Shown: positions 38,252-46,869, numbered from the whole stretch's first letter. The stretch: DNA of 56,025 bases, filler included, from Dugesia japonica (GCA_001938525.1; 6 parts of 6 records of this genome joined end to end with filler, not necessarily neighbours in it); one strand, 5' to 3'. The notes: generated by a model not told the origin, from the sequence alone. Numbers and translations: made by a program.

Positions 38252-38550
38252 GGAAGGAGAAGAGTTTCAGAAGGAGAGTTACAGAGGAAATGGAGTTTCA
38301 GAGGAAAGAAAATTTTAGAGGAAGGCGAAGAGTTTCAGAGGAAGAAGAAGAGTTTCAGAGGAAGAAGAGTTACAGATGAAATGGAGTTTCGGAGGAAAGA
38401 AAATTTTAGAGGAAGGCGAAGAGTTTCAGAAGAAGGAGAGTTTCCGAGGAAGAAGAGTTTCAGAATAAGGAGAAGAGTTTATGAGGAAGAAGAGTTTCAC
38501 AGGAAGGAAAAGAGTTTAACAGGTAAGAAAAGTTATAGAAGAAGGAGATC
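38252..38550. repeat. Purine-rich degenerate tandem repeat (GAAGAGTTTCAGAG), probably part of an inverted LTR
   Basis: More than 12 imperfect units; a minus-strand TATATAAAGG lies near 38588-38597. Confidence 0.75.
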
Positions 38551-39250
38551 TATTATCCAATTGATTTTCGATTACGACTTTTATGCGCCTTTATATATCG
38601 GTCAGAATGAAAGGAATTTTAACTTGGATAATGATCTATTATCCCACGGGTTTGAGTATTTACATGCAGCTAGAGGACATCGGTCTATTTGCACGTTGCG
38701 CTACGATCACAGCATTACGGCCTAAACAGTAGGTTATATAGACTGTGGCTTAAATGGCAAGGACATGCTTGTNNNNNNNNNNNNNNNNNNNNNNNNNNNN
38801 NNNNNNNNNNNNNNNNNNNNNNNNNNNNNNNNNNNNNNNNNNNNNNNNNNNNNACAAACAAAATAGCAAAGATATTGGTTGTATAAGCCTCAAATTATTT
38901 ATTATATGGATCGTACAGAGTTAATTACCGAATTCTATTATTTGGCGACAGAAACAAGTTGAGGATAACCGTATTGCCATGATTTACAATTTTCTATTGG
39001 GTCTTTAGGAGGTGAGTGTCACGGATTGTATGCTGCAGTTAAACTTGATAGAAACTACCGAAACTTGGGTTAGATTAGCAACTTATGAGAATGATTACTA
39101 TTTTATATGATTTCAATTATTTTTTCTTTTAAATTTGAACGTTAAGTTTGATAATTATTCATAAATACATAAGTAACATAAAAAATTAAACATTTTATAA
39201 ACTGAATGATATAAATATCGAAATGTAAATTAAAACGAAAAAAATCTTAC

Positions 39251-39625
39251 TGACGCAAGGCATAGCTACTGTCATGTCAATATTAATTCTCAAATTGCTA
39301 TATTAATTTTCTAAAATTTTAATTGGAAATAAATTAGTAACCTGTCATGATTCTTGTCTATTTCAAATGTAAATTTATTAGGAGAATTAACGTAATTCCA
39401 CATTTCTAACACAATCATTATAATTATCAACCCAAATGAAATAAATGACACTGATGTTAGATTAAAGAAATAATATTTATAAGATAATAAACTACTAGTT
39501 GCGCCGGATAATCTTTTTTCCTGATACTCAGGAGGCAATTTAGTAAACAAATCTAACTTTTCAAACTTTGAAGGCAATGATTTCTCAGTATTTTCAACTG
39601 ATGTATTTCTTCGACGAAGTTCCAT
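39251..39625 (-). CDS. ERGIC2: ER-Golgi intermediate compartment protein 2 (Erv41 family), exons 1-3 only (39625-39496, 39450-39342, 39297-39251)
   Basis: Removing 45- and 44-nt GT-AG introns gives ...FEKLDLFTKLPPEYQEKRLSGATMSFISFGLIIIMIVLEMWNY...FTFEIDKNHDSNLRINIDMTVAMPCV|GTAAG. This parallels human LDAFPKVPESYVETSASGGTVS...YEVDKDFSSKLRINIDITVAMKC. Confidence 0.88.
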
Positions 39626-40949
39626 TTTAAAAAATTGATTTACAGTAAATAATGTGTGCTCTAAATATTTTAAAATTTATTATTTTTAAGGTTTAATTTA
39701 ATAATTTAACAAAACATAGAATAATATTTTAAAGATATTATCGACAAATATTTTAAGAAACATTTAAAATTGCACCTTTGCAATGAGATATTTTAGGCAA
39801 TATAGTATATTAGAACAATGGAAAATATAAAATTATTTAATGCAAATTTAAAAAGAATGTTTTTATAATTACAAATTAATTGTGACTAACATTCTATGTT
39901 ATTTAAAATTATTTTGATAGCAATGATGACTTTTAATTTGTAAGAATTTAACAAGTTAACAAAAAATTATCTTAAAACTTTAATTTCGTAGAAATATTTC
40001 AATACGTTTGTGAGTTATTTTCAAAATGAATAATAATAATTATTTTATTTGGCAAATCAAAATTTATTTCTCGGAATAACAGATAAAAGGTATAGTAATA
40101 AATTTAATTAGACATCATTTTTAAAATTTTATTAAATAAATTGAAAAAATGTGTGTGTGTNNNNNNNNNNNNNNNNNNNNNNNNNNNNNNNNNNNNNNNN
40201 NNNNNNNNNNNNNNNNNNNNNNNNNNNNNNNNNNNNNNNNNNNNNNNNNNNNNNNNNNNNNNNNNNNNNNNNNNNNNNNNNNNNNNNNTCCTCGTTAGTA
40301 TTTACATATTCATAAAACTGTTCACGTGTAAATCTTTTAAATTGTATTTTGTTGGAATTCTAGCTTTGACAGAGTTTAGTAAAGGTTTGTTTCTTTCTTT
40401 CGTCCATTATGAATTAATCAAGAAGAACACTCTTTTTACATTATCGTTATGTCCGGAAATACAGAAAAAAATTCATAAATTCTAAGTAACTTCGAATATC
40501 ACNATGAATTTTGGCAAATTTATAAAAATTCACACTACTGTGCATGAAAGAGGCTTTCAAAAGATTTTTCATTTTTATCCTGCACGAATAATTAAAAATT
40601 GCAATATTGGTGAAACCATTCGACATTATCTACAGTTATATTTTACTCTTTCAGGTTAATTATTAAAATTTTGAACTATAGTCTCGGTTAATTATATGTT
40701 TATCTTTAAGTGAGAAACTGTTGTGCAAAATCTTCAACTTCTGTTTAAGAATATTAAAATGATATTGATGATCAGGAAAAGTATTGGGACTAGTGAAACG
40801 ATAGATGAAGTCGTGACAGTGCAGGCTAAGACCCCTCAAGAAAAGAATTTAAAAATGAAAATGATTATTAAAAATTTACAATAATTTTTAACCAATCAAA
40901 AATAATTTTTCTAAACTTTCAATTTAATTTAAAAGATGTTTTTTTTTGA

Positions 40950-40985
40950 AATTAAAATTTTCGACAATAGTCTTCTTCAGGGATT
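40950..40985 (-). ncRNA. Hammerhead-core copy of the short repeat
   Basis: Minus strand CCCTGAAGAAGACTATTGTCGAAAATTT; stem I degenerate. Confidence 0.5.
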
Positions 40986-42033
40986 TGATTTTAAATATTT
41001 TAAAGTAAATATTTCAAAGTAGTCTTTCAAATATAAATTTTAAAAATACATTTAATAATAATAATTTTCAGAAATTTAATCAAATATTTTATTAAAATTG
41101 AAAACAATTTTTCATTATACTTTAATTATTTTCCAAAGTTTACTATGAAATTTATAGTCATATATTATTAGTAAATTTAATCTTTTTCAATTAAATTGAG
41201 ATTTCTCAAAGAAACAAAATTATATTATCTAAAGTTGGTATGCAAAAAATTTTTAAAATGACAGCGATTTTTAAAAAATTAACACCATGCAGAGATTTGG
41301 AAAATTAATTTTCTTAATTTTTAACTAATTAAAAGTGATATTTATAAAAATTTCAATAAATTAAAAAGTCAAGACAAAAAGACGATTTTGTAGTTCTTAT
41401 TTAAAATCAAAGTTTTTATGAAAGTCTTATTCAGGAATTAAATTTAAAAATTGTGAAGTAAATTTTAAAAATTGTCAGTGAACAAAAAGTAATAAAAAAA
41501 TATCTAAATAGGCATTAACTTGTCGAAAAATATTTTCTTAAAATTTTAAAAATTTATATTCATAAAAGACTTTATATAAATTTGGTCAAGTTTCTTATGA
41601 AGTCTTTATATTAATATTAACAATATTATTTGATTGTTTAAATGTATTAATTTAAATAAAGCTAAAATATCAATAAATCTTAATTAAATTGTGTGATTGG
41701 TGGTTTGGGAAATTAAAACGTTGAGTAACAAATAACATTCATTTATCGTGTTTGTGTGTTATTAAACATCATCAGTAATTAGTCAATTTTTGGAAAATCC
41801 AAAACTATTGTTTGTGTTGGAGGTTATATTAACTGATTATGTTTTATTATGAGTTTGTTTGTCGATTAATAAATGTGAACACTTATTAAAATTTCAATGT
41901 AAAAAAAAGAAAACGAAAATTTTTAATAATGAAATATTTCCAAAAGAGAAAATTGTGATTTAAAAAATATGAGATTTGCCGAAGAAACTTTATAATTTAA
42001 ATTAATCTAACAAAAAGTTTATCTTTGAAGTAA

Positions 42034-42180
42034 TTCCCTGAAGAAGATTCGTCGAAATTCAAATTTCTTACAAGAATTTAAGAAAATAAATCTTTAATTT
42101 AAGGTTTTAAATTTATGGAAACTTTAAATAATTCTATCAGTGGTTAATTTTAACAATTATTCTAGTAATAATTTTAATCC
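42034..42180 (+). repeat. Degenerate copy of the hammerhead-bearing repeat
   Basis: CCCTGAAGAAGATTCGTCGAAATT ... TGGTTAA....AACAATTATTCT. Confidence 0.5.
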
Positions 42181-42449
42181 TAATACGAAAGATTTTAACA
42201 CAATTATTTTTAAAAGTTTTCAAAAATAAAATTAAGTAACAAAAAATTAAATTCTGCTTTGTTTTTTAATATTATTGAATATCAATGGCTTCAGTGTACT
42301 TCGATTGAAATTTGTTGAATGATTTGAAATTTTTAATATACTTTGCAATATGATAAACAATTTCTTATTTAGTCATATGGTTGTAAATATTTTAATTTCA
42401 AAAATGAAATCTTCGATAAATCTGTTTTCTCATATTTGAAATATAATAA

Positions 42450-42680
42450 TTTTTAGTAAGCCTGGATGATATTTTATTAAGCGGCAGAAACAAAGATGAA
42501 CACGCCGACCAAATTTGTAAAGTTTTTCACTTAATTAAACAAGTAGATTTTAAACAATAGCTAAGTAAATGTGATCAATTCAGAAAAAGTAAAATATTTG
42601 GGCATACAATTAGAGTTAAAAGTGCAAAGAAAAATAATGAAACTATTGAAAAATTCGATACACCGTAAAGGCAAAATATG
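42450..42680 (+). mobile_element. Ty3/gypsy RT fragment
   Basis: FLVSLDDILLSGRNKDEHADQICKVFHLIKQVDFKQ*LSKC...GHTI. Confidence 0.7.
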
Positions 42681-43158
42681 TTACACGTAAATACAAGCAT
42701 TTTTTAAAATTAAAAAATATAAACTATTTATCAATTTATAAATAATATATAACTATAATAATTTTAGACAGAAATGACGGAATTTATGAATAAAATTGAT
42801 ATGAAAATCTTGATTCCTAATTTATTGATAAAAGATTCAATTTGAAATTTACACAATTATTTTTGATATTTTTTTTATAAACTTCTTTTATTGAATTGAA
42901 ATTTTTAAAATTTCTCTATGTGAATTTCACGAAAAATCGAAGATTTTCACAATTTTATTAAAATTTAATTATATTTTATACTAATAATTTTTGTTTAAAC
43001 ACAACAATAAGTTAATAAATTACAAAAGCAATTAATGAATTTTTAATTTTAAATTTTCTAGTTTTTTTGCAATAGTTTTCTTTAATTTTTATTTGGATAA
43101 TATTTGTTTACTAAAATACATTTATTATACATATTTTTATCATAACAATATTAAAAAC

Positions 43159-46100
43159 ATGTTTAACGACGACGAAATTACTCCAGAAAATTGGCAGAAA
43201 TGTGCTTGGAATGTAATTGATAGTTTTTTTAATGAAAGGGGTCTTGTAAGTCAACAGCTAGACTCGTATAATGAATTTATATGCCATTCATTACAAGTAA
43301 TGGTTGATGAATATCCAAAAATAGAAGTTGAAGGTGAAAAGAATTATAGTTCTGGAAACGATAAAGCAAACCGGTGCGAATATAAATTTGGTCAAGTTTC
43401 TTTAAAGAAACCACATTGGTATGATGCGAACGGAGTTGGCCGTATTTTATTTCCAAATGAAGCAAGACTAAGAAATTTGACATATAGTGTCGAAGTATAT
43501 GTTGATTATGCAATGAATATCGAAAGGATCAATGGTGAATCTAAACAAATAGAAAAGCAAACAATGAAAATTGGCGAAATTCCTTGTATGTTAAGATCGG
43601 AATTTTGTCATCTTTCTGACATGAATGAAATCGATTTAACTCAAATGAACGAATGTCCATTAGATCCTGGAGGATATTTCATTGTAAATGGCTCGGAAAA
43701 GGTTTTAATTGCACAAGAAAGAATGGCTTATAACACAGTGTTTGTATTCCCATCTAAGGATAAATATCTTTATAAGTGTAGTGTAAAATCAATGGTGGAA
43801 CAAAGCTTTAGATCTCCAAGTACTTTTGGAGTGCATTTATGTAAACAAAGTTCCTTGGTAAAAGGAATATCCGGTCCAGTTATTATATGTCAGATTCCAT
43901 ATATTAAAGAAGATATACCAATCGTTATTTTATTTCGTGCGATGGGTTTCGTATCTGATCGAGATATTATTGAAAGAATAATTTTTAATTCCGATGATAT
44001 TGATATGCATGAAGTGCTAAAACCATCATTTCTCGAAGGTTCTGTTATTCAGACAGAAGATGCAGCTCTTAATTATATTGGATCAAGAGGTGCCAAAGAA
44101 GGTACTCCAATTCTTCAAAGAATTAAATTTGCCAAGGATATAATTACAAAAGAGATTTTACCGCATGTTGGTTTAACTGAAAGCAGCACAAACAAAAAGT
44201 CTTATTTTCTAGGCTATATGGTTAATAAATTAATAATGACTTCATTAAAAAAAAGAGTTCCAGATGATCGAGATCATATGGGACACAAGAGACTTGATTT
44301 AGCTGGACCATTATTGGCATCAATATTCAAAGGGTCTTTCAAAAATCTCGTTAAAGAGTTAAAAATGAATACTGCGAGACTTCTAAATGGAAAAACTGAT
44401 TTTAATGCCTCACATGCTATGAAACATAGTCCCATCACATTAGCTATGAAATACAGCTTAGCCACTGGAAATTGGGGAGATCAAAAAAAAGCAAGTGAAA
44501 CAAGAAAAGGAGTATCTCAGGTATTAAACAGACTTACATATGTGGCAGCTTTGTCACATTTGAGAAGAACCAATTCTCCTACAGGAAGAGATTCGAAACT
44601 AGCAAAACCACGTCAGTTGCATAATACACAATGGGGCATGGTATGTCCAGCAGAAACTCCTGAAGGTCATGCTGTAGGATTAGTGAAAAATTTAGCACTT
44701 ATGGCATACGTTTCAGTTGGTAGTAAAAGTGACCCAATTATAGAATTTCTAGAGGAATGGAGTATGGAGAGCTTAAACGAAATTGCACCATCTGCTATTG
44801 CTAATGCCACAAAGATTTTGGTAAATGGAAGTTGGGTTGGAATTCATCGAGATCCTAATCAATTATATAAAACATTAAAAAAATTGAGAAGATCAATGGA
44901 TGTGATAGCTAGTGAAGTTAGTATAGTTCGTGATTATTCTCAAGATGAAATAAAGATTTACAGTGATGCTGGTCGAATATGTCGACCTTTACTAATTGTT
45001 GATGATCGAAAGCTGGTTATTAAAGAGAAACATATTGATCTTCTAAAGCAATCAAGATTTGGATGGCATGATTTGATTTCCGGAGGCCTAGTAGAATATG
45101 TTGATACTTTAGAAGAAGAAACATGCATGATTGCTATGGTACCAGCGTATATTAGTGGAGACTCGAAATATTGTAAAACGTATGATCATTGTGAAATTCA
45201 TCCATCTATGATTCTGGGTGTTTGCGCAAGTATTATTCCATTTCCTGACCATAACCAGTCCCCTAGAAACTGTTATCAAAGTGCTATGGGTAAACAAGCT
45301 ATGGGCTTTTATATAAGCAATTTTCAAAAAAGAATGGATACTTTAGCACATGTTCTGTATTATTCACAGAAACCTCTGGCATCATCTAGGGCCATGGACT
45401 ATTTGAAATATAAAGAACTACCAGCAGGAATTAATGCAATAGTAGCTATAGCATCATATACTGGCTACAACCAGGAAGATTCTATTATTTTAAACGAATC
45501 GTCTATTGAAAGAGGACTCTTTAGATCTGAGTTTTATCGAACTGTCTGTGAAACTGAAAGTACTAATTCGGAGTTAGTCGAATGTATTGAAAAACCTTAT
45601 AGTTCAGAAACACTTGGAATGAGGGAACGAGAATATATAAAATTAGATTCAGATGGATTAATTTGTCCTAATGAAAGAGTATCAGGGGGTGATGCTTTAA
45701 TCGGGAAAACAGTAACAATTCCAGAGTCAAGTGAATTTACAGATATCCAAGCGAATAATACATTCAAGAAACGAGATTGCAGTTTTTTTATGAAAAAAAC
45801 TGAAAACGGCATTGTTGATAAAGTAATGATAACTACAAACAACGATGGTTCAAAAATGGTCAAAACAACAATTAGAACAACCAAAATACCTCAAATTGGT
45901 GATAAATTTGCATCTCGCCATGGTCAAAAAGGTACATGTGGAATCAGATATAGACAAGAAGATATGCTTTTTAACAGTGAAGGTGTAACACCCGACATTA
46001 TTATCAATCCTCATGCTATTCCAAGTCGTATGACTATTGGTCATTTAATAGAAACTTTAGTTGGAAAAGTAGCAGCTATTCGTGGAGAATCAGGTGATGC

Positions 46101-46629
46101 AACTCCATTTAATGATTTTATCAATGTTGGAAAAATATCTAGTCTTTTAAAAGAAGTAGGATATGAAAAAAGCGGTAATGAAATAATGTATAATGGTCAC
46201 ACAGGCAAAAAATTAAATACAACAGTATTTTTGGGGCCAACATTTTATCAAAGGTTGAAGCATATGGTAGATGACAAAATTCACAGCAGAGCAAGAGGAC
46301 CTGTTACAATGATGACAAGACAGCCTCTTGAAGGTAGAGCAAAGGATGGTGGTTTACGATTTGGTGAAATGGAGAGAGACTGTCAAATTGCTCACGGCGC
46401 GGCTCTTTTTTTAAAGGAGCGGTTACTAGACTGTAGTGATGCATATATCATTTATGTGTGCAAAGAATGTGGATATATGGTAATTGCAAAGCCATCAAAA
46501 AATTTATTTGAATGCAATTATTGTAACAAGATGACACAAGTTGCCAGAGTAAAATTACCTTACGCTGCCAAGCTATTGAATCAAGAACTGCTATCAATGC
46601 ATATTACTATGAGACTTAGATGGGATTAA
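43159..46629 (+). CDS. RPB2: DNA-directed RNA polymerase II second-largest subunit, intronless, 1156 aa from the first ATG (MFNDDEIT...)
   Basis: Hallmark motifs: [111 protein letters not shown], CxxC-x15-CxxC. AATAAA at 46649. The track start at 43093 is an upstream TTG. Confidence 0.98.
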
Positions 46630-46869
46630 TTATTTGTTTTTAATAATTAATAAAATTTTATTGATTGTTCATTTTTTCTTTTGATAATTTTAACTATATT
46701 TTAACGATTAGATTCCTATTTGAATAAAATACGAAGTTAATGTAATAGTCAAGTTAATTTTTTGGAGTTNNNNNNNNNNNNNNNNNNNNNNNNNNNNNNN
46801 NNNNNNNNNNNNNTTAATTAATTAANNNNNNNNNNNNNNNNNNNNNNNNNNNNNNNNNNNNNNNNNNNN

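Follow-up and report, generated by a model that had tools for sequence, protein, structure and literature searches.

Does the intronless gene at positions 43159–46629 (+ strand) of a 56,025-nucleotide stretch of Dugesia japonica assembly GCA_001938525.1 (six records joined end to end with filler; hereafter the window) encode a specialised second copy of RPB2, the second-largest subunit of RNA polymerase II (Pol II), or the ordinary RPB2 of an unusual lineage? A sequence-only reading of the window had taken the lack of introns and a series of altered residues as signs of a retro-duplicated paralogue that might serve an alternative polymerase. We find an intact member of the RPB2 family that has been under long-term purifying selection and whose changes are clade-wide. 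The explanation that we favour, with little more than even confidence, is that of an ordinary working RPB2 from an AT-rich organism sampled by the DNA runs, within a lineage that evolves very fast and is sparsely sampled. The gene, hereafter the query, is most likely the working copy in its own genome.

The longest open reading frame (ORF) of the analysed piece (38252–46769), and its sole long one, extends from 43093 to 46629 on the + strand, with the first ATG at 43159 and a TAA stop at 46627–46629. The coding sequence comprises 1156 sense codons with zero interruptions, in agreement with the intronless RPB2 of 3.47 kb described before. Its GC content is 33% overall (31–37% along its length) and 22% at third codon positions (GC3), and an open frame of this length and composition is not attributable to chance. 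All seven Rpb2 domains (Pfam RNA_pol_Rpb2_1 to _7) are collinear on one chain over residues 28–1153, above their curated cut-offs and with E-values from 3.5e-139 to 9.9e-14. When compared with solved structures, the protein scores about 1607 bits to chain B of human (POLR2B), pig and bovine Pol II in an end-to-end alignment (query residues 3–1153). The scores are 1307 bits for yeast RPB2, 847 for archaeal Rpo2, 762 for RPC2, 601 for plant NRPD2/NRPE2, about 400 for RPA2 and 211 for the poxvirus homologue. Because this ranking favours human and yeast RPB2 over the Pol I, Pol III, Pol IV/V, archaeal and viral homologues, the predicted product is an RPB2 of the Pol II type. Like any RPB2, it would supply the lobe, protrusion, fork, wall and hybrid-binding elements of the cleft of Pol II and contribute to holding the catalytic metal.

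Every catalytic motif named in the sequence-only reading was located intact in the translation, the zinc ribbon included, and all coordinates were recovered. On the + strand, GYNQEDS of the active site occupies residues 769–775 (45463–45483), a 12-residue active-site and hybrid-binding motif residues 914–925 (45898–45933), PSRMT residues 955–959, HMVDDK residues 1035–1040, and the C-terminal Cys4 zinc ribbon (CKEC...CNYC) residues 1101–1122 (46459–46524). The substitutions listed in that reading are likewise all present on the same strand. HMGHKR replaces the canonical H[YF]G[NK]KR at residues 373–378 (44275–44292), and the 12-residue fork loop 1 region (residues 443–454; 44485–44520) is of a KKA-x-ETRKG type where canonical animals have KKAHQARAGVSQ. 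Fork loop 2 covers 14 residues (473–486; 44575–44616). NQSPRNCYQ (residues 699–707; 45253–45279) carries T705C at a universally invariant column, and switch 3 reads EGRAKDGG (residues 1058–1065; 46330–46353) with R1062K, again at an invariant column. Within fork loop 2, the loss of Ile is common to the query and its relatives and G479S is private to the query; neither PTGRD nor GRDSK was found in this loop among the 120 best database matches and 80 metagenome loci. EGRAKDGG is not unique to the query, being present in a few of those 80 loci (a tally gave 3).

The protein as a whole is strongly diverged. Apart from one relative described below, its identity to every other animal RPB2 is only 59–62%. 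Among 7,996 matches from a word-index search of 5.8 billion proteins, the top 120 are without exception animal RPB2, with an even 56–61% identity; that collection holds no entry for the query's own sequence. The nearest match in the Joint Genome Institute (JGI) metagenomes is 61% identical, with none closer, and full-length matches in a search of 1.84 billion representatives reach at most 51% identity, alongside fragments. No canonical animal representative was listed in the latter search, so that it added no closer kin. With the same single exception, no kin above 62% identity was found in the three collections, and exact-product look-ups of the full protein and of a guessed partial product returned no match. 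The best full-length match of the representative search (P0122) is a 1149-amino-acid RPB2, 51% identical and with a branch of 2.2, from gene-dense and apparently intron-free marine-metagenome contigs (L081–L084, Tara Oceans included) of a compact eukaryote.

Comparison with 45 other sequences (36 named animals and 9 unnamed metagenome sequences) shows where the divergence lies. At columns at least 95% conserved in the 36 animals, the query keeps 551 of 675 states (82%), whereas a flatworm, Trichoplax, a nematomorph and nematodes keep 96–98%. The 45 other sequences are all identical at 346 columns; the query keeps 326 of these states and departs from 20. In a first tree the query falls on the animal side, and its terminal branch measures 1.83, the median being 0.12. 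Animals and the query form a clade apart from fungal-like and other outgroups with 100% support in the Shimodaira–Hasegawa-like approximate likelihood ratio test (SH-aLRT), which places the query with animal RPB2.

The exception was found by a search restricted to residues 200–425, where animals are 91–95% conserved and the query is only about 50% identical to them. This relative, P0285, is a 1024-amino-acid product on a 3756-nt Logan contig (L085, run SRR33002330) from a sample other than the query's. In the restricted region it is 60% identical to the query, as against 47–51% for canonical animals, and over the full protein 64–66%. L085 is genomic DNA of 41–46% GC, interrupted by a single 79-nt intron (GT-AG) close to the 3' end, and its spliced product has 1159 amino acids. 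In a tree that includes P0285, the two proteins form a clade with 100% support on a stem of 0.80, with tips of 0.78 (query) and 0.62 (P0285), and this clade joins the animals, again with 100% support. No closer kin of P0285 was found when looked for.

The two proteins have much of their oddity in common. HMGHKR, the Cys of NQSPRN-C-YQ and the KKA-x-ETRKG type of fork loop 1 (KKA-A-ETRKG in P0285) occur in both, and exon 2 of L085 encodes an identical EGRAKDGG. Fork loop 2 differs, P0285 having SPSGRDGKLPKPRQ with PSGRDGKLPK as its loop. Four of the five altered elements that had been read as a sign of a specialised paralogue therefore also occur in P0285/L085. The near-intronless L085, with one 79-nt intron in 3.5 kb, likewise weakens the argument from intronless structure to retro-duplication. 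The two proteins are also equally diverged: at 673 columns at least 95% conserved in animals the query keeps 549 and P0285 550, and identity to a fish RPB2 is 60.8% and 61.9%, respectively. Nonsynonymous and synonymous proportions of difference between the two genes are 0.22 (pN) and 0.82 (pS, saturated). Of the 346 invariant columns, both proteins depart from the invariant state at 13, with the same replacement at 10; a further 7 are altered in the query alone and 15 in P0285 alone.

Because an independent and equally divergent relative carries the same states and the same near-absence of introns, we read divergence and intron poverty as traits of the lineage and not as marks of a relaxed paralogue. 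The odd residues (fork loops 1 and 2, switch 3, NQSPRN-C-YQ and HMGHKR) and the near-intronless structure would then have arisen on the lineage stem. Faster or relaxed evolution of the query relative to P0285 was not found in tip lengths, conserved columns or private changes. If anything the query appears the more conservative of the pair, since it has about half as many private changes at invariant columns. The sequence-only reading had named a branch length typical of the lineage as grounds for giving up its own proposal, and the query's branch is typical of the lineage's RPB2.

These comparisons also bear on the possibility that the gene is a retrocopy already dead or on its way there, a pseudogene without expression whose frame happens still to be open. 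Such a copy could be expected to lack introns and RNA reads and to have decaying sister copies, as is the case here (see below). A frame of 1156 sense codons in DNA of 33% GC speaks against it, as does its preservation throughout a long tip branch. The 326 invariant residues kept point the same way, and so does the fact that 13 of the 20 that changed are changed in P0285 too. We regard this explanation as very improbable.

The favoured reading, an ordinary RPB2 of a fast-evolving lineage, has to be weighed against what sequencing reads show. DNA runs with one species label, from three separate studies (2014, 2015 and 2025), hold 84–95% of the sampled words of the gene. In one of them (X1), word depth over the gene is 12–17 in a run of 763 million letters; for a reasonably pure sample, this corresponds to a genome of a few tens of megabases. 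Reads of X1 and of three raw RNA-seq runs that share this species label (X11, X12 and X15) were mapped to 41000–46769.

Several results weigh against this reading. In 16 contig-level runs with the same label, guessed to be RNA although their kind is not on record, the share of the gene's words is 0.00. X11, X12 and X15 (1.6–1.9 billion letters each) contain zero reads at least 95% alike on the gene, with the proviso that these runs may represent a different organism. A P0285-like RPB2 is covered about 10-fold in one of the three. Near-copies of the gene, about 92% alike and of equal depth, are present in X1 over 45165–45217, 45360–45537 and 46158–46527, which demonstrates duplication. The neighbouring gene has short exons and introns, in contrast to none in 3.5 kb of RPB2. 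Finally, approximately unbiased (AU) tests under LG+G4 reject no union of the query with Cnidaria, Nematoda or Spiralia (p 0.17–0.19), so RPB2 alone cannot place the lineage.

What the RNA runs do hold are reads 90–95% alike on three ultra-conserved patches only (44447–44483, 44605–44660 and 46363–46397). All ten codon changes within these patches are synonymous (10/10). The reads continue into unlike sequence, and their loose ends, roughly 45% GC, translate to LKSNVITDG, SPSGRDGKIP, EGGLRF and AAQFLKERL. By its translated ends the transcribed gene is a P0285-like RPB2, neither the query nor a canonical one; its nucleotide identity to L085 is about 70%. RNA-type letters at 44457, 44463, 44628, 44649, 44652 and 46375–46380 are absent from every X1 contig.

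The two RNA studies also differ from each other. Reads on 44575–44660 give STKGRDGKIP for fork loop 2 in X15 and SPSGRDGKIP in X12, with 4 of 30 bases different, in two studies under one label.

It may be that several organisms, or several paralogues, come under this one label. Because the RNA type is unseen in X1 and the two RNA studies do not match, the species label looks heterogeneous, and RNA and DNA runs need not come from one genome.

Two or more RPB2 genes in one genome would account for these reads in another way. The GC-moderate, P0285-like copy would then be the housekeeping gene, and the AT-rich query would be silent or specific to a stage or cell type, possibly as part of an alternative polymerase. 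This is what the lack of query reads in RNA that contains P0285-like reads would suggest, and the empty contig-level runs agree with it. An intronless gene beside an intron-containing neighbour, and the further decaying copies in the DNA, which show that duplication does occur, are also as this explanation would have it. An unrelated contaminant is unlikely, given that both RPB2 types fall in one clade that is unsampled apart from them, and precedents exist in plant NRPD2/NRPE2 and in the Rpb2 paralogues of Oxytricha. Against it, the query is no more relaxed than P0285, and the RNA-type gene was not found among the X1 contigs at the diagnostic positions. The difference in GC3 (22% for the query versus 47% for L085), together with the composition of the RNA loose ends, is a large gap for one genome. 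X12 and X15 moreover differ in their RPB2 under one label. A retro-duplication might have left a poly(A) remnant or a target-site duplication; neither an A-run downstream of the stop nor a direct repeat on both sides of the ORF was found, although old insertions lose such marks. On balance we consider a paralogue unlikely, if less so than the other alternatives.

The sequence-only reading had expected a specialised copy to be accompanied by a second, more conserved RPB2 and by restricted expression of its own. Superficially this is what we see, in that a second RPB2 type exists and RNA reads on the query are lacking; the second type, however, is not more conserved and is unseen in X1. The part of the argument for a specialised paralogue that came from sequence has thus failed. 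What remains in its favour is the lack of RNA reads, the other RPB2 type in RNA of the same label and the duplication.

The near-copies in X1 bear on the state of the query itself. Their changes are mostly non-synonymous and fall on universally conserved residues (P682S, L686Q, G687C, P755S, A756T and Q772H, the last inside GYNQEDS), and there is a 1-nt insertion after 45502. The near-copy has the appearance of a duplicate in decay or of a haplotype that has degenerated. At no fewer than 9 sites (at least 9) the query keeps a universally conserved residue that the near-copy has lost. Since the conserved residue is retained at each such site, the query is presumably the maintained copy beside a decaying duplicate, which also argues against a dead retrocopy.

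A variant of the ordinary reading is that the contig derives from a second, related organism that accompanies the labelled one, for example a co-infecting relative, that it came into the assembly as a contaminant and that the gene is that organism's normal RPB2. Its composition is unlike that of the RPB2 which the labelled organism transcribes, the X1 contigs lack the RNA type just as RNA lacks the query type, and small shares of the query's words occur in a sediment metagenome and in a run of a second species. It is harder to reconcile with the recovery of most of the gene's words in the DNA runs of three separate studies under one label, and with its depth in X1, which suits a source that has a small genome and makes up much of the sample. 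We hold this origin to be rather improbable.

Which lineage the ordinary RPB2 would belong to can be approached from the architecture of the piece. Its exons have 31–37% GC and its non-coding sequence 15–25%, introns are 44 nt long, the spacer measures 3.5 kb and high-copy repeats are present. Genomes of the myxozoan Kudoa have an exon GC content of 37%, intron GC of 19–26%, introns of 49–61 nt, intergenic distances of 2.4–3.6 kb, 39–46% repeats and rapid sequence evolution (PMC12239612). The piece thus resembles them in its GC pattern, intron size, spacer and repeats. Exons in Kudoa are about 110 nt long (PMC12239612), and an exon of 3.5 kb would be unusual there too, though P0285/L085 shows the same trait. 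At the diagnostic columns the cnidarian signal is weak. The host is possibly a Kudoa-like myxozoan, which we offer as a lead and not a result, drawn from genome architecture and weak cnidarian leanings.

Other placements were set aside. NTQWGMV and the highest pairwise identity, to Aphelenchus, had hinted at a nematode affinity, which the diagnostic columns do not bear out: they side with nematodes in 5 cases and with other animals in 9. The protein is far too identical to animal Pol II, and has animal-type signatures, for a giant-virus or nucleomorph origin, and the ORF, which lacks in-frame TAA or TAG, gives no ground for a ciliate one. A sturgeon model flagged as contamination (P0284), followed as a lead to a sturgeon parasite, proved to be merely a fish RPB2 model with an internal duplication.

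A more speculative and rather doubtful proposal would combine several of these elements. The organism would be a fast-evolving, possibly myxozoan-like parasite with an ancient near-intronless RPB2 pair, one copy GC-moderate and transcribed, the other AT-rich, silent in ordinary RNA and under strong purifying selection. Such a pair would suggest that an animal has a Pol II-like enzyme of an alternative kind or one confined to a stage.

Compared with canonical animal RPB2/POLR2B (human and pig chain B; PDB 5IY6, 5FLM and 6EXV), the query has the same seven domains, catalytic and zinc motifs and animal-type signatures in 1156 amino acids, versus 1174 in human. It differs in being only about 61% identical, in a fork loop 2 without Ile and one Gly, and in having no introns. 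From its near-intronless sister P0285/L085, with 1159 amino acids, it differs in one third or more of its residues, in GC3, in the 79-nt intron and in fork loop 2. Plant NRPD2/NRPE2 (second subunit of Pol IV and Pol V; PDB 7EU0 and 8HIL), a duplicated RPB2 that serves small-RNA polymerases, was the model of the sequence-only reading; with about 600 bits to it and 1607 to Pol II RPB2, the query is not that paralogue. A literature search for RPB2 paralogues in animals yielded nothing useful. In the ciliate Oxytricha trifallax, an extra RPB2 copy with a development-specific role was reportedly described by Khurana et al. in 2014. That organism has a different genetic code and lineage, whereas the query ORF uses the standard code and groups with animals. 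PMC5312943 mentions RPB2 paralogues in Oxytricha. In public annotation, Myotis bats have several extra near-full-length 'RPB2-like' proteins (P0034, P0039 and P0073), possibly POLR2B retrocopies.

If the favoured reading, an ordinary RPB2, is true, the value of the locus is descriptive: an animal lineage would have let a core Pol II subunit drift to about 61% identity with those of all other animals. That lineage would tolerate change at 13 positions invariant in 45 other sequences, including fork loop 2, switch 3 and NQSPRN-T-YQ, and so provide a natural experiment on 'invariant' residues of Pol II. The case also advises caution, in that motif drift and a lack of introns are insufficient to call a paralogue in a fast-evolving parasite genome. 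Were the gene a paralogue instead, it would show duplication of a catalytic-core subunit of Pol II in an animal, of which cases are rare.

The remainder of the piece contains one other gene. The first exons of an ERGIC2/ERV41-like gene lie at 39251–39625 on the − strand, recognised from stop-to-stop segments and Pfam ERGIC_N matches (1.1e-07 and 0.02). The gene starts at 39625, 3.5 kb upstream of RPB2. It has a certain 44-nt GT-AG intron (39341–39298), an exon at 39297–39251 and a next donor at 39250, plus a possible in-frame intron. The earlier count of three introns in its first 375 nt was thus roughly right, with two secure and one inferred. No ERGIC-like exon was found beyond the donor at 39250 before the masked stretch and the contig edge (38860–39250 and on), and the gene has either a long or interrupted intron or is truncated. 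Scans of the piece with Rfam and for transfer RNA (tRNA) genes gave no signal above chance. The spacer at 39760–43158 is AT-rich (15–25% GC) and an ORF scan found no long frame in it. It includes a high-copy repeat at about 41579–41771, with a word depth of about 925 in X1 compared with about 15 for the gene (60-fold). At the contig edge, 38252–38548 is a tandem array rich in purines, its repeat units 17, 37 and 91 nt long; the GC content of 39% and GC skew of 0.45 are unlike the composition of the rest of the piece.

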